Below, piece by piece: positions 18,858 to 56,974 of a stretch of DNA of 64,000 nt. Numbering within the stretch: the first letter of the stretch is position 1; every line of letters begins with the position of its first letter. The notes beneath the pieces were generated by a model that was given only the letters and a program-made list of their open reading frames with translations, was not told where the DNA came from and made no database searches. Location of the stretch: IMG/VR virus record IMGVR_UViG_3300046542_000248, positions 124,001 through 188,000 of that record. One strand, written 5' to 3'. A program made the position numbers and the translations under genes.

Positions 18858-20936
18858 ATGCTTCAACCAGATCAAATTGAAGAACTTGACCGTATTGCTA
18901 GTGACATTAAAAATATTGACCATGCTTTAGGGAGTGGATTACTTATTCCACTTGGAAATAAAGTAAACTCTTCACGGGCTGCATTAGTATTTCAACAAAC
19001 AGGTCAGTCTAAAAATCTTGTTGAACCTGAGATTGCAAGAGTATCTACTGGATATGAGAAAGTATTCGGAGATAGATCAACTTCTTTCCATAAGACTGAG
19101 AAAGAATTTGAAGTCGTTAACAAGATTCAAAAGTTTGGTAATGACTTTGTATATGCCTTAGTCCTTAGAGAAAAAGGTACAAATTATTATGATCTTGTAC
19201 TTAGAAACGAAGTAGAATCCTTTGCTGAATCTTCCGGCGTAAAGATCAATAACACGGTTATTGACTCTATGAATATCGGAGATAAGATTAGAGAAGGTGA
19301 GATTCTACACAAATCTAATTCCTATGATGAGAATATGAATTATCGTCTAGGAATTAATGCTAAGACAATTTATATGACTGATCCTGCAATTGTAGAAGAT
19401 GGGTTTAGAACGTCTGTCCCTCTTGCATATCGTCTACGTTCCACTGATGTTATACCGTATAAAGTTCCTAAGAATACAAATGATATCTTCTTGAATCTAT
19501 ATGGGAATAGTGAAGTATACAAAACGTTCCCAGATATTGGTGAGAAGGTAAAGAATAAGGTTCTATGTGGAAAGCGCAGAATTGATTATAATAATGCACA
19601 GTATATGCTTAAGAGTAAGAATCTCCGTAAAGAGATGTTTGGTGATACTCTTACGTATACTGATGGTACTGTAGTTGATATTGATATCTACTCTAATGTA
19701 CCTATTGATGATGTTCCTACCGATCGGGTAAACGAACAGACTCTTAAGTACATGAAAATGATTAGCAAATATTGGCATGAACTAAGAAAAGTTCTTGGTC
19801 GTATTGTCGATAATCCTGAGAATGAATATTCAGACCAAGTTGGTATTACTTATGCTCGGGCTAAAGATGTCTTGAGTATTGGTAAGACTACTAAGTGGGA
19901 TGATGATGGTTCTATCTTTGATAATATGATCATGTATTTTACAGTGGTCAATACTAAGAAAGCTGTTATCGGTACGAAACTTGTAGGACGCCATGGTAAT
20001 AAAGGCGTAATCTCCGAAATTGTTGAAGAGAAGTATATGCCACGAAGTGAAGATGGTGAATATGCTGAAATCATCTTTAGTGCTCTTTCAGTTATTGGTC
20101 GTCTGAATCCTTCACAGCTATATGAGCTTGAGCTTAACTGGATTGTGGATGAGATTCTTAATGGTAATGTCTCGCAGAAGAAGAAGTTCGATACACTGCT
20201 TGACTTCCTATCCATCTGTAACCCAAATCAAGAAAAAGTAGTGCGTGAACTATATGATTCTCTTGATAAAGCTGAAAAAGAAGTATTTATGAGTCAACTT
20301 ACAACTGAGTTCGTTACATTCCAACCGCCTAGTATGTCGATTAGCTTTGACAACTATGCTAAACTGGTTGAGAAGGTTGAACCTAAGAAGAAACGCTTTA
20401 CAGTTATGGATGAAAAAGGACAAGTCTTTAACATCCAAAACAAACTGATTATGTCTGATTCATATATCTACAAACTGAAACATGAACCGATTACAAAGTT
20501 CTCTGTACGTTCTAAAGGTACTATTAATCCACGTACATTCCTTCCGATTAAATCGCATGCATATAGCAGAGGAACAGCTCTGTTTAATAACCAAGCGATT
20601 CGGATTGGTAATATGGAAATGGATATCCTCAATCTGTGTAACGATCCTGCGGCTATTAACTACTTTACACGATTGTATTGTACATCCGTAATTGGTCGTC
20701 GTGAATTTGCACAGCTACTTGATACAAACATCTTCCAAGATGAAATGGAAATCGAGATGAACAACTCAACTTCTCGTGTAGTAGATCTATTCAACTCTAC
20801 TTTCATGGTATGTGGTATGGGACTACGTTTCGAATATCCAGATAAGAAAGTAAATGACATCTTCCTTGAAGAGATTAAGAACATGGAAAGCAAACATGTA
20901 AAAGTTGTCTTTGCCGGATGGGATAAGTTTAAATAA
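18858..20936 (+). CDS. RNA polymerase beta C-terminal half, probable non-virion RNAP subunit
   Basis: NSSRA, EDG, GTKLVGRHGNKGVIS, MP, GRLNPSQLYE, YIYKLKH, RIGNME. Confidence 0.93.
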   Translation: MLQPDQIEELDRIASDIKNIDHALGSGLLIPLGNKVNSSRAALVFQQTGQSKNLVEPEIARVSTGYEKVFGDRSTSFHKTEKEFEVVNKIQKFGNDFVYALVLREKGTNYYDLVLRNEVESFAESSGVKINNTVIDSMNIGDKIREGEILHKSNSYDENMNYRLGINAKTIYMTDPAIVEDGFRTSVPLAYRLRSTDVIPYKVPKNTNDIFLNLYGNSEVYKTFPDIGEKVKNKVLCGKRRIDYNNAQYMLKSKNLRKEMFGDTLTYTDGTVVDIDIYSNVPIDDVPTDRVNEQTLKYMKMISKYWHELRKVLGRIVDNPENEYSDQVGITYARAKDVLSIGKTTKWDDDGSIFDNMIMYFTVVNTKKAVIGTKLVGRHGNKGVISEIVEEKYMPRSEDGEYAEIIFSALSVIGRLNPSQLYELELNWIVDEILNGNVSQKKKFDTLLDFLSICNPNQEKVVRELYDSLDKAEKEVFMSQLTTEFVTFQPPSMSISFDNYAKLVEKVEPKKKRFTVMDEKGQVFNIQNKLIMSDSYIYKLKHEPITKFSVRSKGTINPRTFLPIKSHAYSRGTALFNNQAIRIGNMEMDILNLCNDPAAINYFTRLYCTSVIGRREFAQLLDTNIFQDEMEIEMNNSTSRVVDLFNSTFMVCGMGLRFEYPDKKVNDIFLEEIKNMESKHVKVVFAGWDKFK

Positions 20937-24424: not shown

Positions 24425-25042
24425 TTGTCAAAACCATTTGGAGATTTAACACGAGAAGGCGTAAACACACTGTTTAACTGTACGTCAGCAAAACATGGCG
24501 GCAATATTGACATCAATTCAGAAGTTCAAGGATTTATTGATACTGGTGTCTCAAAAGGTATTACACATACCTTAAACCCTTTACTGGGGCAAGGTCCAGA
24601 TAAGCGTTTGGTACTCGGTCCATTCACATATGGGCACGGTGTATTCATGCTTACTGATGAGCAAGGATTCTTTGATAATATCGAAGAATATAAAAAAGAG
24701 CCTAGACTAAATCTAGCTCTGGTTGAGTTGATCGCTGAAAGTATTAGAAGCGATAGCAATGAAATATTTTATGAAGCAGCACATAATTACGCTAAGCTAA
24801 GTGAATATGATGCTGAGACACGCATCTGGACTGAGCAGCCGAATGAAGAAGATCGTGGTGTAGAGTTGGATTCATCCTCTCTATATCTGCTTGCAGCTGT
24901 ACATGTATTGGCAATTGCGCATATGTTACTGCGTTCCGCTAATAAAGAAGAAGCTTCACTAGTTGAAATACCAGGTGAGGGAATCTATACCATTGAGTGG
25001 GTTGACGACCAGTGGGCAATCGGGTTTACTCTCACCCAGTAA
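24425..25042 (+). CDS. Acidic protein, paralog of 25133..25837 (possible HU/IHF-like fold)
   Basis: Shared motifs IDTG, GPFTYG, DRGVE, VEIPGEG.YTIE; GAGGAG RBS; TTG start. Confidence 0.7.
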   Translation: MSKPFGDLTREGVNTLFNCTSAKHGGNIDINSEVQGFIDTGVSKGITHTLNPLLGQGPDKRLVLGPFTYGHGVFMLTDEQGFFDNIEEYKKEPRLNLALVELIAESIRSDSNEIFYEAAHNYAKLSEYDAETRIWTEQPNEEDRGVELDSSSLYLLAAVHVLAIAHMLLRSANKEEASLVEIPGEGIYTIEWVDDQWAIGFTLTQ

Positions 25043-25132
25043 ATATATATAATTATAGTGTATATGACACAATATTAGAAGTATCTAGTGTGTCAAAAAA
25101 TCAAACTACAAATTATTAGGAGGATTTTAACA

Positions 25133-25837
25133 ATGGCTAAAAAACTTATCGAGGTAACAAACGAAGTATCCAGCAAAGCATTTAACTGTGAACGCAACAT
25201 TGACGGTGACAATAAAAAGGCCGAAATTGATATCGCAATTCAAGCAATGATCGACACTGGTATCTCCAATGCAATTCCACGTGCTCTGTTCCTTATCATG
25301 GACGCTGAGCCGAAAGAAGAAGTACAATTGGTTGTAGGGCCGTTCACATACGGTGTAACTGCTCGTAAATCCGGCGAATCCTTATCATTGAATCCAACGT
25401 TCACGTTGACGAACGAAAAGAAATTCTTGGCTGAGCTTGACAATTTCGAAGAGAAGCTGCACAAGAACGTTTCCCTTATCGAAAGCATTGCAACAACTAT
25501 CGACGACGAAGTGTTCCTTGATACTGTTATGCACTGCTGCAAATTGGATGAATACGATGTGGCTGAAAGCGAATGGATTGAAAAGAAAACTGACGCTGAC
25601 CGTGGCGTTGAATTTGATCAAACTTCTTCGCAGCTATTCGTTGCATTACACATCTCCGCAATCATCCATGTCTTGGTTAACTCCAAGTCTCCGGATGAAG
25701 TAGTTAAATATGAAGTACCGGGCGAAGGTACGTATACGATCGAGCGTAAAAAGGACAAATGGGAATTCGGATTCATTCCATCCAAAGAGTTCAAACAAAC
25801 GATCAAAAACGACCGTCTTATCGAAGCCCTCGTCTAA
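25133..25837 (+). CDS. Acidic, probably highly expressed protein with two HU/IHF-like segments
   Basis: AGGAGG RBS; EVPGEGTYTIER...FGFIPSKEFKQTIK resembles HU VQLxGFGTFEV...PAFKPGKxLKxxV; own promoter variant at 25041-25054. Confidence 0.7.
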   Translation: MAKKLIEVTNEVSSKAFNCERNIDGDNKKAEIDIAIQAMIDTGISNAIPRALFLIMDAEPKEEVQLVVGPFTYGVTARKSGESLSLNPTFTLTNEKKFLAELDNFEEKLHKNVSLIESIATTIDDEVFLDTVMHCCKLDEYDVAESEWIEKKTDADRGVEFDQTSSQLFVALHISAIIHVLVNSKSPDEVVKYEVPGEGTYTIERKKDKWEFGFIPSKEFKQTIKNDRLIEALV

Positions 25838-26132: not shown

Positions 26133-28004
26133 ATGAATTATCTAAGCCAGATGGTCGCTAAAATGTCTGACACCATGGTTGATGGTATTAATGAAGATCT
26201 GTTTGACCGCCGGAAAGGGAAACAAATCTGGGAATTTATCGCTGAAGATTTAAGATCAGTAGAAATGTTACCTGATATATTCCTGAAGAATGTTCAATAT
26301 ATAAAGGACCCGTCTAAACTTGATGTTCGTTTGAACCTGAAGAATATTAAGAATAAGAAGATTCTCAAGAATAAAATTGAGAAGCTTATTCCAGTACAGC
26401 CTGATGTATTCGATGCTATTCGATTTACTGTGGATATTGCCGGTGGTCAGAAAGTAGAGAATACTATTCTGCTTCCGAAATATATAGATAGATACAACTT
26501 CATGATCTCTGGGAATAAAACTTTAGCTATGTTCCAGGTTGTAGATAACGCAACTTACAACCGCAAAGGTGAAGTAATCCTTAAATCCAGAATCCAGAAA
26601 CGTCTTAGCAGAGAAGAGAAGAAAAAGAAATATGAGCTTCTCTGTGTTGAGACAGGCAACCTTTACAAGATCAGTAATTTAAATATCAATCTATTCAAGA
26701 AGACTTTCAATCCGTTATACTACTTTGCGGCTAGAAGATCTATTCTTGGAACGATTGATTTCTTTGGATATACAAAGTTTCTTAATCTAGTTACAGAAGT
26801 TAAGCAGCCTGAATTGTTCTATTACTTCCGTATCAATTCTAACATTCTTTTCGAGTGTGAAAAGACGTTGTTTGATGATGACGGATTCTTTAGAACTTTC
26901 ACAGGATTACTTGCTCAGCTATTCAATACTCGTAACAAGATTGAAGATATTTATGAAGAAGAACTTTGGGTCAAGAAACTTGGCACGCTATTCACATCAG
27001 CGGCTAAGAATCAATTGAACAAAGGTTACGATGTTATGAAGTCATTCCGAAACGTTCTGGACACCACAACTCAGAATGCTTTACGGATTGATTACAAAGA
27101 CAAAGCTGATATCTACTGTGTATTACGGTGGATGATGCGAGAGTTCAATGAGTTGAGAAATATGGATAACAACTCCTTGGCTAATAAACGTATTCGTACT
27201 AATGAATATATTGCTGCATACTTTGCACGGTATTGGAAAGATAAAGTTAACTACGCTTTGAATCTGAAGCCGTATGATAAAGACAAGCTTGCACGGATCT
27301 TCAAGGTTGATGAGCACATTCTTATCAAAGCCTTGTTCCGTGGTAAGAAGCCATCTCCACTATTCCGTTACAATATTGATATCAATGATCTTCAAGCATT
27401 GAACGGATTGAAATTCTCACTCACAGGTATTCAAGGTCTGCCATCCGATAAAGTTAAGGATGAACAACGGGATATCTATCCGAGTCATCTTGGACGGTTC
27501 GAGCTTAATGCTATCTCGTCCAGTTCACCAGGTATCTCCGGTATGCTTACTCCATTCTGTAAGATTTATGATGGAGGATACTTCGGAGATTCTCAAGCAA
27601 TCGAGAAGCCTTATATCAAGAAGCTTCGTAAGAGAATCAAAGAGATTAAAACTAATGAGGGTGTATATAATGTGATTAGAGCGCATTATAAAACTCTTGA
27701 GGAAGATCATGAGAAGAGAAGATTCAATCTCAAGTATCGTGAACTTCGAAATGAACGTGGCTTTATCCAGATCGTAAGACCTAGATATATTCGTAATGAG
27801 CGAGGATATATTCGAGTTGATAAGGTGATTAATCCTGCGAGTTACAAACGTACTCCTAAAGGATATATCAAAGTCAACAGAAACTTTGTTCTATTGCGAC
27901 TTACTGCTAGTGTTAAACCTGAATTTAAACAAGGTTCGTATGTTAGAACTCCTGATGGCTATATTGGAATTACAATTAATCCAAACGGTCTATTTAAGAA
28001 ATAA
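26133..28004 (+). CDS. RNA polymerase beta N-terminal half, probable non-virion RNAP subunit, with C-terminal repeats
   Basis: LPK...FMISGN, LANKRIR, fork/Rif region RDIYPSHLGRF....SSSSPGISGMLTPF. Confidence 0.85.
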   Translation: MNYLSQMVAKMSDTMVDGINEDLFDRRKGKQIWEFIAEDLRSVEMLPDIFLKNVQYIKDPSKLDVRLNLKNIKNKKILKNKIEKLIPVQPDVFDAIRFTVDIAGGQKVENTILLPKYIDRYNFMISGNKTLAMFQVVDNATYNRKGEVILKSRIQKRLSREEKKKKYELLCVETGNLYKISNLNINLFKKTFNPLYYFAARRSILGTIDFFGYTKFLNLVTEVKQPELFYYFRINSNILFECEKTLFDDDGFFRTFTGLLAQLFNTRNKIEDIYEEELWVKKLGTLFTSAAKNQLNKGYDVMKSFRNVLDTTTQNALRIDYKDKADIYCVLRWMMREFNELRNMDNNSLANKRIRTNEYIAAYFARYWKDKVNYALNLKPYDKDKLARIFKVDEHILIKALFRGKKPSPLFRYNIDINDLQALNGLKFSLTGIQGLPSDKVKDEQRDIYPSHLGRFELNAISSSSPGISGMLTPFCKIYDGGYFGDSQAIEKPYIKKLRKRIKEIKTNEGVYNVIRAHYKTLEEDHEKRRFNLKYRELRNERGFIQIVRPRYIRNERGYIRVDKVINPASYKRTPKGYIKVNRNFVLLRLTASVKPEFKQGSYVRTPDGYIGITINPNGLFKK

Positions 28005-28018
28005 ACTGGAGGTAGTAT

Positions 28019-28660
28019 ATGCTACGTATAACAAAAGTTACACTTATAAGGCCAGAGGATCAACCTCTGGCTTTAAAGTCGCTTAGTAAAAAGCATAAGA
28101 AAATCCTTAAAGATTTAACTCACAGAATGAAACGTGATGCTTTGGCTAAAGATTGTACAGGCTTCACTAATCCTAATGAGAAGAACATTGTTCTTATGGG
28201 AGATCCTGATGAATACACCACTGTAAAAGGTCATGTTACTGATGATCATTTAGCGGATTTTGATTATCACCATGGTGAAGGTGCAAAATTCATTCTAGTT
28301 AATATAGGTCGTGGAATGTATAAGAAGCTTTCATTGAAAGCCTATGAAAAATTGTCCAAGATTCTATATATGACTGTACGAGTTAAAGCAACTGTATTAA
28401 CAGATGGTGACGGTGAGAATGATAATGATTATGAAACCGTCATGGATGACACATACAATGTCGCATCATTAAATTATCTATTCGGTATAATACCTCGTAT
28501 AGAAGGTGTCATTGATGGGCGTTCTGCTTTCCAGAGAAGTCAAGAAGGCTGGAATACAATCAATGAAACTGATATTACTGTGAAGATTCTTAATAAGAGT
28601 GGAAGTGTAGAAGTTCATACACTCCATAAGTTTCTAGACAAGTATAAACTATTCTACTAA
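28019..28660 (+). CDS. Hypothetical protein
   Basis: GGAGG RBS. Confidence 0.7.
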   Translation: MLRITKVTLIRPEDQPLALKSLSKKHKKILKDLTHRMKRDALAKDCTGFTNPNEKNIVLMGDPDEYTTVKGHVTDDHLADFDYHHGEGAKFILVNIGRGMYKKLSLKAYEKLSKILYMTVRVKATVLTDGDGENDNDYETVMDDTYNVASLNYLFGIIPRIEGVIDGRSAFQRSQEGWNTINETDITVKILNKSGSVEVHTLHKFLDKYKLFY

Positions 28661-28673
28661 TGGAGGTATTCAA

Positions 28674-29324
28674 ATGAAAAGATCTGATATTGATAGTATT
28701 TGTGTCGGTGATAAATTTAAAGATGATCAAGGGGTACTATTTAAGATTAGAACGTTTCATGGTAGTAGACATGTTTGGTGTGAATGCTGCGAACATCCTG
28801 ATCCTGAACGTCCTTATCCTTTAGACCATTATGATTGCTATTTCTTACGTGATAAAACATTACTAGATCGAATCAATGATTATCATGATGAAATTACAAT
28901 GGCTGTCGGTGCGTCTACTGCTATACCATATGAAGCTAATCTTATTCTTAAACTTATCATACCACATAGTGAGAATCCTAATCCTATGAGGATTGAAATG
29001 CTTAAGAAAGCAAATAAAAATCTAGATATTCTTAAAGGTATCTTTACTCCTATGCCGGATGAAAGTGAAGGAATGAAGAAAATAATAAGAAAAGGTCTTT
29101 TAACCATCAAGATGGATGGCGATCCTGATCCGGATAATTATATCTTCCAAGGTGAAACGGAAATTATATTGAATAATGACTTCCAACTTGAAAAAACCTG
29201 GAATGGTGACGATACAGAATCCATAATTCCTCCTGATGTGGCTTTAAAAGCTTGTCAACAGGTTGATCAAGAGATTTTTGATTTTATGAAAAAGAATGAA
29301 ACAGAAAAAGCCCAAGAGGAGTAA
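28674..29324 (+). CDS. Hypothetical protein
   Basis: GGAGG RBS; N-terminal Cys/His cluster. Confidence 0.7.
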   Translation: MKRSDIDSICVGDKFKDDQGVLFKIRTFHGSRHVWCECCEHPDPERPYPLDHYDCYFLRDKTLLDRINDYHDEITMAVGASTAIPYEANLILKLIIPHSENPNPMRIEMLKKANKNLDILKGIFTPMPDESEGMKKIIRKGLLTIKMDGDPDPDNYIFQGETEIILNNDFQLEKTWNGDDTESIIPPDVALKACQQVDQEIFDFMKKNETEKAQEE

Positions 29325-49219: not shown

Positions 49220-51337
49220 ATGGGAAACAAAAAAGAGAAAAAAGCTAGACTTAAATTGAAAAAGAAAATGAAAGAGGTAGCTAAGACCCGCTACGCTATG
49301 GGTAATTGGAAACATAGTTTGAATGAAATTGTGGCACAGCTACAAGAAGAAGGGGAATTCACATCTACTGGGGATAGAAATCGAATCTATCCTACAATTA
49401 ATGAATTCGGTACTATTGATTCATATGATTCATATATTGAAGCACTAATCACTGGCACTAAACGCCTATTGTCTGATGGTAAGGATGAACTAGCCAAACT
49501 GACAATGGCATTCAAGTTTAATTCGGATGACGAATTTGAAGAGATGAACTATGTACGTTTCCTCTTCAATATTATCATGTGGCGTCCGTTTATCGTATCT
49601 AACATTGCTGTGACTAAGAAAGATATCTTCAATGCTGAAGTATTCCACAATAAGAAATATGAGGAGTATTTCAATAACTTTGCAGATAGATTTAGAGATA
49701 GATTTACAATGCAAGAATACTCTGAGATTCTATTCGATATTCAAGTGTATATGAATAAGATCGCAGTTGAACTTGGTCCGTTATTCGGTAACTCCATCTC
49801 TATCTATGACATGGTAAAGATGGCAAAACGTAATAACGAAATCAATGCTTTAATGAATACGGAAGTAGATCTTGAAAACTTCCAAGTCAGTCAAGTAGAG
49901 GAATTCCTCATCAAACAGACTGATCGCTTCTTCCAAATCTTGATGAATGAATCGGATAAGAATAATCCTCTTAAACCATTCATTCGTGCAGGTGTAGGTG
50001 TAAACAAACGTCAAGTTCAAGAGATCTTCTTGCACTTGGGCTTTAAACCGGATTTATCAGGTTCCACTATGCCATTAACTAGTAACAGTAACTTTACTAC
50101 TTATGGCTTGAAAGATCCAAGAGCATTGTATGTGGATGCTCAAGGTGCTCGTAAAGCCGCTATCATGCAGCTCGCAGTTAGTGAGTCAGGCTATTACGGT
50201 CGCCATCAAAGTTTCGTAACTTCGAATGTCGTACTACATGAAGATCCATCGTATTCTTGCAATACGAAGAATCTGTTGAATATCAAGATCGAATCTGCAT
50301 TGGATCTTGAACTATTTGATGGACGGTTCTACAAAACTGGTGAGAAGCGTTACAAGATTCTTACACAGAAAGACACAAATCTAATTGGTGAAACTCTGGA
50401 GTTCAGAACACCACAAACTTGTGCGAATAAAGATAGTCATATCTGTAAAGTCTGCTACGGTACAATGTATAACGTAAACTACGGAATGCATGCAGGACTG
50501 TTTGCAGCAATTGATTCAAATGAAAATAAAACTCAGCGACAGCTATCTGCACGACATGCATTAGCTACAATGAGTGCCACCATTAACTTGATCGACGAGA
50601 AGATGTTCCTAATCAATCAAAATGGCTGGCTGTTTAGTCTTAATAATGATATTGATAGAAGTAAGTATTCTATCGTATTCAATGCTTCGGATGTATTCAT
50701 GGATAACCCTGAAAACTACGAGCAATATGATAATTACTACGTTAATAAACTGACGTTCAAGAATAACAAAACCGAAGAACATTTCGAAGTGTATGAGGAG
50801 CAAAATACTCATATGTATTTGAGTAAGCAACTGTACAGCACTCTTAGAGATAAGAGATTCTTCGGGTTAGATAACGATGAATCTATCTCAATCCAATTAA
50901 AGAACTTCAGCATTGATGAGCCATTCACATTCTTACGGATCTCAAATGCTGAACTTGCTAAACCGCTAAAAGAGTTGGCTGGATTCATTCAAAAAGGTAA
51001 GAAACAACTTGAAGATGTTTTCGATTACCATGAATTCACTGATAAACTGAATAAACTTTATAGATATGGGGGTATGGCAATCCCATCCGTCCATATTGAA
51101 ATGCTTCTGAGAAATCTTATTAGAAGAACTGATGATGAGTTAAAGATTCCTGATTGGGAAGTAGAACAAACTCCTGATATGTATAAGATGGTTTCACTCA
51201 ATGATTCCATCATCCTATCAAACTCTGTAACTCTTGGATTGATGTTCGAGAAAGTTCGTCGTCAACTTAAAATGCCAAGAACTTATAGAAAACGTGGAAG
51301 TTCGATCTATAGCGTACTGTTCATTAACGAGCAATAA
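49220..51337 (+). CDS. RNA polymerase beta' C-terminal half, probable non-virion RNAP subunit
   Basis: Bridge helix GARKAA.....SESGYYGR, Zn site RTPQTC...ICKVCYG, trigger loop TQRQLSARH, HIEMLLRN. Confidence 0.9.
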   Translation: MGNKKEKKARLKLKKKMKEVAKTRYAMGNWKHSLNEIVAQLQEEGEFTSTGDRNRIYPTINEFGTIDSYDSYIEALITGTKRLLSDGKDELAKLTMAFKFNSDDEFEEMNYVRFLFNIIMWRPFIVSNIAVTKKDIFNAEVFHNKKYEEYFNNFADRFRDRFTMQEYSEILFDIQVYMNKIAVELGPLFGNSISIYDMVKMAKRNNEINALMNTEVDLENFQVSQVEEFLIKQTDRFFQILMNESDKNNPLKPFIRAGVGVNKRQVQEIFLHLGFKPDLSGSTMPLTSNSNFTTYGLKDPRALYVDAQGARKAAIMQLAVSESGYYGRHQSFVTSNVVLHEDPSYSCNTKNLLNIKIESALDLELFDGRFYKTGEKRYKILTQKDTNLIGETLEFRTPQTCANKDSHICKVCYGTMYNVNYGMHAGLFAAIDSNENKTQRQLSARHALATMSATINLIDEKMFLINQNGWLFSLNNDIDRSKYSIVFNASDVFMDNPENYEQYDNYYVNKLTFKNNKTEEHFEVYEEQNTHMYLSKQLYSTLRDKRFFGLDNDESISIQLKNFSIDEPFTFLRISNAELAKPLKELAGFIQKGKKQLEDVFDYHEFTDKLNKLYRYGGMAIPSVHIEMLLRNLIRRTDDELKIPDWEVEQTPDMYKMVSLNDSIILSNSVTLGLMFEKVRRQLKMPRTYRKRGSSIYSVLFINEQ

Positions 51338-55378: not shown

Positions 55379-56974
55379 ATGAATAACGACATCATTGCCA
55401 ACTTCTCGCATTATGTAATTCCTAATTACAAAGAAGAAGGCACAGAAGATCAACTGACCTACTTAGAGAAGGCTTTGAGTACGTTTGATAAAAGAATCTA
55501 TCGTTATATCCCTATTGGGTATCATTACAATATGGAAACTAATGAGCTACGGATTCCAAGAGGATATCCATATCAAGATATTCTCAACTCTTTCAGATTC
55601 AAAAGAAAGATGACTGTTAATCAAAAACCGCAAGAATATGATAAGATTAAGTTAAGACTCTTTCAGAATCCTAGAGAACAGTTGCAAGTAGAAATGATGT
55701 CTTTCCTATGTGGATTAGGCAAACATGCTTACACTGCAAAATTCTCTCAGGTATTTTGTGATCTGAATACAGGTAAGGGTAAAACCTACTGTACGGTTGC
55801 ATCACTATCTTATTTCCAAGATAAAATCGTCATATTCATTCCATCTAAGCTAAGTAAGCTTATAGATCAATGGTATGACGCATTTACGGACTATACTGAT
55901 AAAAAACCTAGAGACATTCTGATTGTCCGTGGTTCTGATATGTGTGAAGATATTCATAAAGGTAAGTACGCTGATAAAGAAGTGTTTATCATTACAAAGG
56001 GAACTGCACTATCATATGCTAACACATATGGTTGGACTAAGTTCCAAGAGATGATTGCACAGACTAAAGCTGGAGTTAAGATTATTGATGAAGCTCATAT
56101 GGATATGAGATCCAATGTCTTAATTGACTGCTATTCCAATGTTAAGAAGAATATTTACCTCACAGCGTCTGCTCTTAGAGGTAATAGATTCGAGAATGAA
56201 ATCTTCAAAAAGATCTTCAGCGGTGTGCCTATATTCGGTAAAGAATTAGTCAAAGCTGAAGAGAATTATATCATTATGCTTATGTATTTCTTTAAGCATA
56301 TGCCTAATGTTAAACAAAGAGCTTCCTGTAAGATAAGAACCAATGATGGCTATGGTCTATCGGCAGTGAAGTATTCTAATTATCTTGTATCTAAAGAAGG
56401 TGCAAGACAAGAATTCTTTACAGCTATGAATAAAGCTATTAGAGATATCTTTGTGAAATACAGAAATAACTCTGGCTTTGTTAGCTTACCTAATATTGGA
56501 CCTGGTAAATATATCAGAAACTCCAATGGCAATATTCAAATCAATAGAACTGAAAAGTTCCAAGGGAAACTTCTTATCCTTGGAGCAACGATTGAATTCC
56601 TCAAAACTATACGAAAGTTCTTAGAAGTAAACTTTCCTGAATATAGCATAGGGTTATACTCTGGCGAAATTAAGGATATGAAGATAAGAGAACTTGAGTT
56701 GGAGAAAGATATTATCCTTGCCACTGAAAAAGGTATTGGGACTGGAGCAAACATTGAAGATCTTCAGTTTATGATCAATACCATTCCTTATAGCAATCCA
56801 GTGTATGCGAATCAACTACCTGGTCGTTTAAGAGAACTTAAAGGAAGAAAAGTTTACTATATGGAATTAATCAATACAGAATTTAGTGAAGCTGCTAAAC
56901 AATATGAAAGACGATCCAAATTCCTAATGGAAAAAGCTAAAAGTAATAAACTAATAACCGTGTCTGTCACCTAA
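55379..56974 (+). CDS. SF2 DExH helicase (UvsW-like)
   Basis: TGKGKT, IDEAH, LTAS, GTGANI, QLPGRLR. Confidence 0.88.
   Translation: MNNDIIANFSHYVIPNYKEEGTEDQLTYLEKALSTFDKRIYRYIPIGYHYNMETNELRIPRGYPYQDILNSFRFKRKMTVNQKPQEYDKIKLRLFQNPREQLQVEMMSFLCGLGKHAYTAKFSQVFCDLNTGKGKTYCTVASLSYFQDKIVIFIPSKLSKLIDQWYDAFTDYTDKKPRDILIVRGSDMCEDIHKGKYADKEVFIITKGTALSYANTYGWTKFQEMIAQTKAGVKIIDEAHMDMRSNVLIDCYSNVKKNIYLTASALRGNRFENEIFKKIFSGVPIFGKELVKAEENYIIMLMYFFKHMPNVKQRASCKIRTNDGYGLSAVKYSNYLVSKEGARQEFFTAMNKAIRDIFVKYRNNSGFVSLPNIGPGKYIRNSNGNIQINRTEKFQGKLLILGATIEFLKTIRKFLEVNFPEYSIGLYSGEIKDMKIRELELEKDIILATEKGIGTGANIEDLQFMINTIPYSNPVYANQLPGRLRELKGRKVYYMELINTEFSEAAKQYERRSKFLMEKAKSNKLITVSVT

Follow-up and report, generated by a model that had tools for sequence, protein, structure and literature searches.

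The stretch of DNA considered here (the window) covers 64,000 nucleotides, bases 124001-188000 of the 246,901-bp viral record IMGVR_UViG_3300046542_000248, which has a G+C content of 35%, was assembled from a rhizosphere metagenome and belongs to an uncultured soil jumbo phage. The open reading frame (ORF) at 26133..28004 encodes the beta-N subunit of an AR9-type non-virion RNA polymerase (nvRNAP), and beyond the conserved core of this subunit it continues into a C-terminal tail which carries four copies of a short motif, termed the hairpin unit below. That the protein is an RNA polymerase beta-N subunit had been proposed in the initial annotation of the sequence, and several independent comparisons agree on it. 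The PHROG 2943 profile ("polymerase") matches residues 258-505 at 2.3e-25, residues 74-485 align with residues 58-474 of the 496-residue AR9 gp105 (PDB: 7s00_c; phmmer, 1.5e-50), and tblastn recovers the counterparts in AR9 and PBS1 at 4e-42. In a tblastn search of 50,697 phage genomes the protein matched only nvRNAP beta-N subunits, namely those of AR9/PBS1, of Bacillus, Staphylococcus and Listeria jumbo phages and of phiR1-37, and all of these matches stop at query residue 478-493. An AlphaFold2 model of the full-length protein (73 homologues, predicted local distance difference test score (pLDDT) of 82) was compared with solved chains by VIA-align. Its residues 2-493 superimpose on residues 1-484 of gp105 (7s00_c) with a Z-score of 30.5 and a root mean square deviation of 3.1 over 465 residues at 27% identity, and lower scores were obtained with the phiKZ nvRNAP chain 9rjs_E (Z 21.9) and with bacterial beta subunits (Z 15-16; Thermus thermophilus 15.6). 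The model aligns over residues 14-488 or 10-488 with residues 10-490 of T. thermophilus beta, and over residues 10-488 with residues ~18-610 of Escherichia coli beta. No solved chain aligned to the model beyond residue 493.

The tail that follows the core comprises 138 residues (aa 486-623), with a net charge of +20 and an isoelectric point of 10.3 (Table 1). The initial annotation had listed four repeats in it, had placed them after the conserved beta region, and had described them as a basic array of beta-hairpins ending in a degenerate further repeat, NPNGLF. All four repeats lie in the ORF where they were reported, and the basic character of the tail is evident from its charge. They do follow the conserved region, but a segment of about 50 residues (aa 486-535) which is predicted to form a helical hairpin intervenes; its pLDDT is 89-95 in the full-length model as against 80-90 when the tail is folded alone. 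Hairpins are likewise predicted for the repeats, but only at low confidence (pLDDT 51-67); in unit 4 the modelled strands lie at residues 603-605 and 611-613. When the window is translated in all six frames (128,000 residues), the regular expression R...G[YF]I occurs only six times, four of them inside 75 residues of the tail, which excludes chance clustering. The glycines of the four units occupy positions 543, 558, 577 and 609, with spacings of 15, 19 and 32 residues. Between the DNA copies of the units only brief, imperfect matches remain (17 nucleotides at 82%), which marks the repeat as old and as maintained at the protein level.

The sequence NPNGLFKK, which follows unit 4 up to the stop codon, is present as reported; it is better taken to form a third strand in the last unit than to be a fifth repeat, since the same ending, ..[IV]T[IL].N..(hydrophobic)F..KK, comes after the unit at the C-termini of a replicative helicase and an HNH-family protein of the same phage. 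Unit 4 (YVRTPDGYIGITINPNGLFKK) is similar to both the end of the helicase (KYVRNERGLISVTINTEFFSKK..) and that of the HNH-family protein (DYVRNSRGYISVTLSNTGIFNYKK), and in the form SYVRTPDGYIGITINPNGLFKK its match with these two extends past the hairpin. A sequence search of the PDB with the tail found nothing, and Pfam searches at E<=10 with eight tails returned noise only. The tail of the relative P0022 has a weak match to the RRP7 C-terminal family (0.0022, under the cut-off), which rests on a DEDGF-like motif. A relationship to the choline- or cell-wall-binding hairpin repeats (CW_binding_1) was considered and rejected, as there is no Pfam match and C-LytA chains appear only at Foldseek E-values of 1.7-5.6 and TM 0.1.

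Table 1. Features of the beta-N subunit, the other nvRNAP subunits within the window and the further carriers of the hairpin unit; positions refer to the window unless marked as genome positions
Feature	Position	Strand	Description and basis
nvRNAP beta-N subunit gene (P0001)	26133..28004, including stop codon (28002-28004)	+	623 aa; ORF listing, PHROG, phmmer, AlphaFold2
Conserved beta-N core, aa 1-485	26133..27587	+	ends at fork-domain motif RDIYPSHLGRF..SPGISGMLTPFCKIYDGGYFG
Linker and helical hairpin, aa 486-535	27588..27737	+	helices 493-507 and 509-534; net charge +6; AlphaFold2
Hairpin unit 1, aa 537-547, ELRNERGFIQI	27741..27773	+	position kept in P0002-P0014, looser in P0015-P0023
Hairpin unit 2, aa 552-562, YIRNERGYIRV	27786..27818	+	conserved position
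Hairpin unit 3, aa 571-581, YKRTPKGYIKV	27843..27875	+	AlphaFold2 strands 571-573 and 579-581; conserved position
Terminal unit 4 and third strand, aa 603-623, YVRTPDGYIGITINPNGLFKK	27939..28001	+	core motif YVRTPDGYIGI (aa 603-613, 27939-27971)
nvRNAP beta-C subunit	18858..20936	+	692 aa; tblastn AR9 gp089 6e-97; Pfam Rpb2_6; PHROG 3295; N-terminal sequence
nvRNAP beta'-C subunit	49220..51337	+	705 aa; tblastn AR9 gp154 5e-46; PHROG 3015
DnaB-like replicative helicase (L099)	genome 120366-122312, just upstream of the window		PF20307 aa 211-541; PHROG 19; unit aa 622-632
SF2 helicase (ResIII/DEAD)	55379..56974	+	internal unit aa 378-388, YIRNSNGNIQI (56510-56542); Pfam, PHROG, profile HMM
HNH-family protein (L100)	genome 76483-76860		125 aa; PHROG 3377 aa 14-98; ends ..DYVRNSRGYISVTLSNTGIFNYKK

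The position of the tail relative to the architecture of cellular beta subunits is informative. The motif which closes the core lines up with the fork-domain stretch of E. coli beta, and the beta-C subunit, characterized by an LLIPLGN..SSRAAL motif, starts at LLIPLGNKVNSSRAAL, the counterpart of E. coli SLIPFLEHDDANRALM (~675), which defines the other side of the split. The earlier statement that the tail begins at the split between beta-N and beta-C stands, but its companion, that cellular beta is continuous at this place, hides an excursion of about 100 residues, the external 1 domain. This domain (Pfam Rpb2_45, PF10385) corresponds to residues 591-656 of E. coli beta, the beta-N core ends at E. 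coli ~588-610, and, because the domain lies between the fork-motif and beta-C points in cellular beta, the tail occupies a pre-existing domain slot. In AR9 only about 50 linker residues are found between the fork motif and the start of beta-C. The cellular external 1 domain is similar to the tail in being placed between the fork and the hybrid-binding domain, and to its predicted structure in being small, rich in strands and endowed with turns of the glycine-aromatic-hydrophobic type. It differs from it in that its segment in E. coli is acidic-looking (as judged by eye, the charge not having been computed), and in that it leads back into beta, whereas the tail includes an additional helical hairpin and ends the polypeptide.

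A sequence relationship between the two was not detectable by hidden Markov model (HMM) or profile-profile comparison. The PF10385, PF04566 and PF04567 HMMs match nothing in the genome at E<=10, a tail profile run against E. coli beta with hmmsearch misses the external 1 region, and hhalign gives a probability of 0.2% both against E. coli beta alone and against a profile of 80 proteobacterial sequences. In both hhalign runs the sole aligned stretch sets a unit on YA(Q/R)TNEYGFLET of bacterial beta, and the unit resembles E. coli beta YAQTNEYGFLETPYRKV. Protein language-model features of residues 486-623 and 536-623 place the tail nearest to clusters of Rpb2_4/5 and Rpb2_45 fragments, with scores of 0.85-0.91 and few shared features. 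The beta subunit of the virion RNA polymerase (vRNAP) of the same phage (1384 aa; genome 86807-90961, reverse strand) is not split at the fork; in the region of residues ~915-975, only about 35 residues link its fork to the hybrid-binding domain, and they contain a single SSRGYIDV hairpin (IVSSRGYIDV), the counterpart of the bacterial NEYGFLET.

The hairpin unit is not specific to the polymerase, being a portable element of this phage clade that is also found on helicases and on an HNH-family protein, and this changes what has to be explained. A repeat-profile HMM detected weak matches in other ORFs of the genome, and four ORFs contain the strict pattern Y-[VI]-R-N-x-x-G-x-I-x-[IV], which appeared in none of 300 within-ORF shuffles. 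The DnaB-like replicative helicase ends in a tail reading ..KYVRNERGLISVTINTEFFSKKTEWQEF, which consists of a K/E-rich helix and one copy of the unit. In the superfamily 2 (SF2) helicase the unit is internal; residues 377-394, KYIRNSNGNIQINRTEKF, lie between the two RecA-like domains, just before the Helicase_C domain, and are preceded by a half-unit, RNNSGFVSL, so that one and a half units are present. The HNH-family protein and small proteins of 81-86 residues, at genome 91498-91758 and at position 2310 of the related genome G002, terminate in the unit, intact or degenerate, with a run of lysines after it.

A degenerate DNA pattern of the motif has between three and five matches in each of five related viral genomes and none in the reversed control. 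These matches fall in beta-N in all five genomes and at the C-terminus of the DnaB-like helicase in four, with no homologue of this helicase found in the fifth, G005, which is 21% complete. Helicase C-termini from these relatives include YVRNSNGFIVIKMNESFFKNKKEWQDF, KYVRNEKGFIPIHINHNFFKNKMEWRDF and LYVRNPNGYIRLTRKVR. The unit of the SF2 helicase is present at the same position in the homologues of G001, G003 and G005, and G002 has the motif in an 81-residue ORF ending ..MYVRNENGFIRLTRVADNATKGKKKKTK. Among the 15 full-length homologues of the DnaB-like helicase at 50-83% identity (P0169-P0183), 14 have the unit at the C-terminus, one of them in two copies; the truncated P0184 (438 aa), which does not include the region of the unit, is outside this count. 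More distant helicase homologues have acidic-aromatic ends, e.g. ..EFEPFDF... In AR9, there are zero copies of the motif in all six frames, and its DnaB-like helicase gp007 ends in ..DSGIPF, which resembles the tip of the single-stranded DNA-binding protein (SSB).

The resemblance of the two C-termini within a genome is seen in short-sequence BLAST comparisons of helicase ends with beta-N tails, which yield E-values of 5e-9 to 2e-4, while reversed tails never score better than 0.01. The best such match pairs GSYVRNSNGFIVIKMNE with GTYIRNNDGFIEIKINE. The flanks of the unit also vary jointly by lineage, such that ..IIPILNRRPR.. on beta-N is accompanied by ..LIPIRRP.. on the helicase, and ..IKINE..PF.KK goes together with ..IKMNE.FF.NKK. 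A third correspondence, KGFIKLTKK..ENGFV with KGLIKLTRK..ENGLV, involves helicase P0186 and beta-N P0022, which come from different samples and have not been placed on one genome. Among the pairs compared, helicase and beta-N are confirmed on one genome for G000 (P0001/P0169), G002 (P0011/P0181) and G003 (P0004/P0172); a same-genome origin is inferred from contigs of equal length for P0007/P0175, P0012/P0176 and P0009/P0179, and the pair P0005/P0174 combines a beta-N from a 7,895-bp contig with the helicase of G001, i.e. close relatives and not one genome.

A word-index protein search identified 97 relatives of the beta-N subunit. In those 56-88% identical to it (P0002-P0014) the units are found at the same positions, in line with the earlier expectation that the tail would be kept in close relatives, and in those 28-40% identical (P0015-P0023) looser units such as RDENGFIKL, DAKGFIKLTKK and ENGRIIISKR are seen. 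The consensus derived from 48 units of 14 proteins is Y-[VI]-R-N-E-[RK]-G-[YF]-I-x-[IVL]-x-[RK], with R at position -4 in 46 of the 48, N at -3 in 36 and I at +2 in 47, and the glycine of unit 3 is invariant in all 22 aligned tails. In a tree based on core columns alone (FastTree, midpoint root, support values not inspected) all proteins with hairpin tails form one clade, in which three units are the rule and the fourth is restricted to a crown group (P0001-P0006). The sister clade has a tail of 85-97 residues that is acidic (net charge of -1 to -13, as opposed to +3 to +26 in the hairpin-tail clade), and a third group has an AR9-like length and is almost tail-less. The acidic tails of the sister clade (P0026-P0092) end in ..EYIDGFDIFGDG.MFY.... 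Homology between the basic and the acidic tail was considered and rejected on the basis of an hhalign probability of 0.1%. The end of the protein that arose through the beta split thus appears to be a hot spot at which lineages attach modules of their own, namely a basic hairpin array in the present clade, an acidic tail unrelated to it in the sister clade and next to nothing in AR9.

Within the clade, identity ranges over 22-66% in the repeats, 28-84% in the helical-hairpin segment and 61-92% in the core, and the ratio of nonsynonymous to synonymous substitution rates (dN/dS) is ~0.15-0.26 in the repeats as compared to ~0.01 in the adjacent core, these values being rough as dS is saturated. 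On the whole, the tail evolves faster than the core and is nevertheless under purifying selection. It is carried by seven IMG/VR contigs and is found in the same ORF as the core in every relative; P0018 has no relative in the viral contig collection. A tblastn search with the tail alone found nothing in deposited phage genomes (best E 0.4), and the tail is absent from AR9, PBS1, the Staphylococcus jumbo phages, phiR1-37, phiKZ and cellular beta. Hence, the repeat is not a known feature common to all homologous subunits, a possibility which the initial annotation had singled out as damaging to its proposal. The AR9 genes gp106 and gp107 were examined as candidates for a tail encoded as a separate downstream gene and bear no likeness to it. 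A profile built from the repeats alone was run exhaustively against 1.84 billion representatives and gave 15 matches, the real ones being C-terminal fragments of beta-N; two are other proteins with similar repeats, and the remainder, generic D/N-x-D/N-G-x-I loops of the toastrack, EF-hand and NHL kinds, was discounted. The closest non-polymerase look-alikes in this collection are P0100 and P0102, secreted-looking metagenomic proteins in which four RNDDGYYVV.RP units are split by lysine-rich linkers, and one of which has a weak RRP7 C-terminal Pfam match.

The AR9 beta-N subunit gp105 (PDB: 7S00, 7S01, 7UM0 and 7UM1, chain c; Fraser et al. 2022, PMC9209446) has a homologous core with the same fold and the same split after the fork domain. 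It is 496 residues long, stops about 22 residues past the core with a short acidic end, and has neither the helical hairpin nor the units; gp001 of Staphylococcus phage Madawaska (540 aa) similarly has a short acidic tail. Split subunits, a trigger-loop insert, the C-terminal domain of beta' and an HD fusion are covered by the papers on the AR9 and phiKZ structures, by a 2020 review on RNA polymerases of jumbo phages and by a comparative-genomics survey of these phages; a beta-N tail or a shared hairpin motif is described in none of them, and Pfam, PHROGs and the PDB contain no model of either. Judging from these comparisons, the protein looks like a known polymerase subunit bearing a previously undescribed accessory module that is common to DNA enzymes of one uncultured clade. 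The nvRNAPs of jumbo phages are the most stripped-down multisubunit polymerases known, being devoid of alpha and omega and having split beta and beta' subunits, and how they assemble and hold their template continues to occupy the field (PMC7598289, PMC9209446). Against this background, a unit of 11-22 residues which is common to the nvRNAP and a replicative helicase might offer a concrete handle on DNA binding, or on a partner that links transcription and replication.

We tentatively favor the interpretation, at a rough probability of 45%, that the unit is a sequence-nonspecific nucleic-acid contact element, most likely for DNA, and that the tail is an accessory arm of the polymerase. The module consists of the helical hairpin followed by three or four predicted small basic beta-hairpins or three-stranded mini-sheets, added to beta-N in a lineage-specific manner. 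Its unit, Y-[VI]-R-N-x-x-G-[YF]-I-x-[IVL], continues in the full C-terminal form as ..T-I-N-x-x-(hydrophobic)-F-K-K, and further copies are present at the end of the DnaB-like helicase (one), inside the SF2 helicase (one or two) and at the end of the HNH-family protein and of some small lysine-rich proteins (one each). The conserved arginine and the flanking lysines and arginines would contact the backbone, while the hairpin would be held together by the conserved aromatic and isoleucine residues. A flexible arm that emerges at the beta-N/beta-C split and bears several copies might in this way help a split enzyme devoid of alpha and omega to grip its template or transcript more firmly. In this proposal, as in the earlier suggestion that the array binds nucleic acid or a partner protein, the binding and its consequences for transcription are what we infer; the anatomy, conservation, distribution, sharing, charge and selection are matters of observation.

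This interpretation is based on the charge of the tail, on the conserved arginine with its flanking basic residues, on the kinds of proteins that carry the unit and on a likeness to the arm-binding domain of lambda integrase. All carriers of known function act on DNA or RNA, and one copy is internal to a helicase. HNH proteins of the homing type typically carry small C-terminal DNA-binding modules. The weakly predicted repeats (pLDDT 51-67), standing beside a confidently modelled core and helical hairpin, would fit a flexible arm that becomes ordered on binding. The first two strands of the lambda Int arm-type domain (PF09003), LYIRNNGYYCYR, show the same Y-I-R-N-(x)-G-Y-hydrophobic pattern as the unit, and the full C-terminal unit leaves room for three short strands, as in the sheet DNA binders of the arm-type, AP2 and Tn916-Int kinds. 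The unit is moreover carried by DNA enzymes, and one of its carriers belongs to the HNH family, whose members often possess AP2-like modules (e.g. AR9 gp190). The helix which completes arm-type and AP2-like domains is, however, missing from the unit.

Several further observations weigh against a nucleic-acid contact role. The lambda Int stretch LYIRNNGYYCYR is picked by hhalign at a probability of only 0.5% over 13 columns, which is not significant, and the PF09003 (Arm-DNA-bind_1) and PF00847 (AP2) HMMs match nothing in the genome at E<=10. The hairpins themselves are predicted at low confidence; a Foldseek search of the PDB with the tail-only model found nothing below E 1, and VIA-align of this model against 48,161 chains produced only generic helical-hairpin matches with Z<=4.5. 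Three of the four carriers have the unit at the C-terminus, a placement that protein-docking tags typically show as well. Finally, the acidic-aromatic ends of distant helicases, together with the acidic beta-N tails of the sister clade, fit a co-evolving protein partner better than DNA.

Such considerations lead to the main alternative, in which the unit is a shared docking tag that would recruit the nvRNAP, the helicases and the HNH protein to one phage or host partner, for instance SSB, a clamp-like factor or a scaffold of the replication compartment. We regard this as somewhat unlikely, and give the same weight to its corollary that the multiple copies on the polymerase would provide avidity and that late transcription would be physically coupled to the replisome. 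It would explain why three carriers have the unit at their very C-terminal end, behind linkers that are flexible or charged, and why the helicase tail and the last beta-N unit are alike beyond the hairpin and change together between lineages; the occurrence of acidic or aromatic ends in its place on both the distant helicases and the sister-clade beta-N points the same way, and the lack of the whole motif set in AR9 would be expected of a system gained as a unit. The difficulties are that one copy is internal to the SF2 helicase, that the net charge of +20 and the K/R-rich flanks are more typical of nucleic-acid contact, that the ENGFV/ENGLV example of co-variation is not tied to a single genome, and that co-variation is explained equally well by repeated copying of the module between genes. 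Comparable arrangements are familiar from other systems. The sliding clamp gp45 of phage T4 couples late transcription to the replisome via the C-terminal tails of gp43, gp33 and gp55, the matched acidic tails of T7 gp4 and gp2.5 act on the T7 polymerase, and the C-terminal tip of bacterial SSB is a hub-binding tail of the same sort. The unit is comparable in being one short C-terminal element common to a polymerase subunit and replisome proteins of one phage, and it changes in concert between lineages. The tags of the other systems differ in being short peptides, acidic or hydrophobic, whose partners are known, whereas the phage unit is a basic predicted hairpin that occurs in multiple copies on the polymerase and inside one helicase. 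The specific proposal that the nvRNAP and the replisome bear the same lineage-matched tag (a basic hairpin here, an acidic-aromatic one in sister clades), which docks both on one hub, appears unlikely on present evidence. If it were true, late transcription would be coupled to DNA replication in an independently evolved counterpart of the clamp-dependent late transcription of T4.

Two further explanations concern the polymerase alone. In one, the tail would be an inter-subunit staple which wraps beta-C or beta', with its basic residues paired to acidic surfaces, and thereby holds together the split enzyme in the absence of alpha and omega. The tail does emerge exactly at the beta-N/beta-C split, the assembly of split jumbo-phage polymerases without alpha is an acknowledged open question (PMC7598289, PMC9209446), and the rise in pLDDT of the helical hairpin in the full-length model suggests that at least this segment packs on the core. 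Yet the AR9 and phiKZ enzymes assemble without a tail (PMC9209446, PMC8287921), the unit cannot act as a polymerase staple on a helicase, an HNH protein or small proteins, and no clade-specific insertion or deletion that might mark a docking site was found in beta-C; this explanation is therefore improbable. A predicted complex of tail residues 486-623 with beta-C, for which alignments of both chains were supplied, gave an ipSAE of 0.00, a value that counts neither for nor against binding. In the other, the tail would be a highly diverged external 1 domain (Rpb2_45, or Rpb2_4/5 of archaea and eukaryotes) that stayed with the N-terminal part when beta was split and that AR9 has lost, or else its units would reiterate the native hairpin that follows the fork in every beta. 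The end of the core and the start of beta-C bracket Rpb2_45, the stretch chosen by both hhalign runs resembles the unit, the unsplit vRNAP beta has IVSSRGYIDV at the equivalent spot, and the nearest language-model neighbors of the tail are fragments of these same domains, an unproven lead. None of the HMM and profile searches lends it support, the NEYGFLE counterpart is more likely IYDGGYFG at residues 478-485, inside the core, and the language-model scores lie under the tool's own mark of 0.9, with few features in common and no calibration for partial proteins. As a leftover polymerase domain would not also sit on helicases, we consider this origin very improbable.

As for the rest of the polymerase, the beta'-N subunit is encoded at genome 1803-3320 (2e-28 with the AR9 protein) and a gp226-like specificity subunit at genome 207245-208759 (phmmer, 2.4e-22). 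Together with the three subunits in Table 1, all five AR9-type nvRNAP subunits are encoded by the genome. Because the gp226-like subunit is encoded, the idea that the tail might stand in for it was ruled out. Subunits of the virion RNA polymerase are likewise encoded, the gene order beta-C, NAD ligase, beta-N is common to this genome and AR9, and an alternative genetic code is not needed. In the phmmer alignment, R363 of AR9 gp105, which stacks on the -10 uracil in AR9, stands opposite an asparagine in P0001, and gp105 K375 is apparently kept; the comparison covers residues ~369-385 of P0001 and 359-382 of gp105, where the alignment is uncertain. The promoter chemistry of the P0001 enzyme may therefore differ from that of AR9.

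The neighborhood of the beta-N gene contains two pairs of ORFs on the forward strand. Those at 24425..25042 and 25088..25837 (205 and 249 aa) are adjacent paralogs with the common motifs GPFTYG, DRGVE.D and PGEG.YTIE and belong to no Pfam or PHROGs family; in relatives (L011) the interval from the ligase to beta-N holds several ORFs of about this size. Directly 3' of beta-N are ORFs 28019..28660 and 28674..29324 (213 and 216 aa), which have no family match and are absent at that position in the L010/L011 relatives; the more distant L126 has a 216-residue ORF after its beta-N gene.

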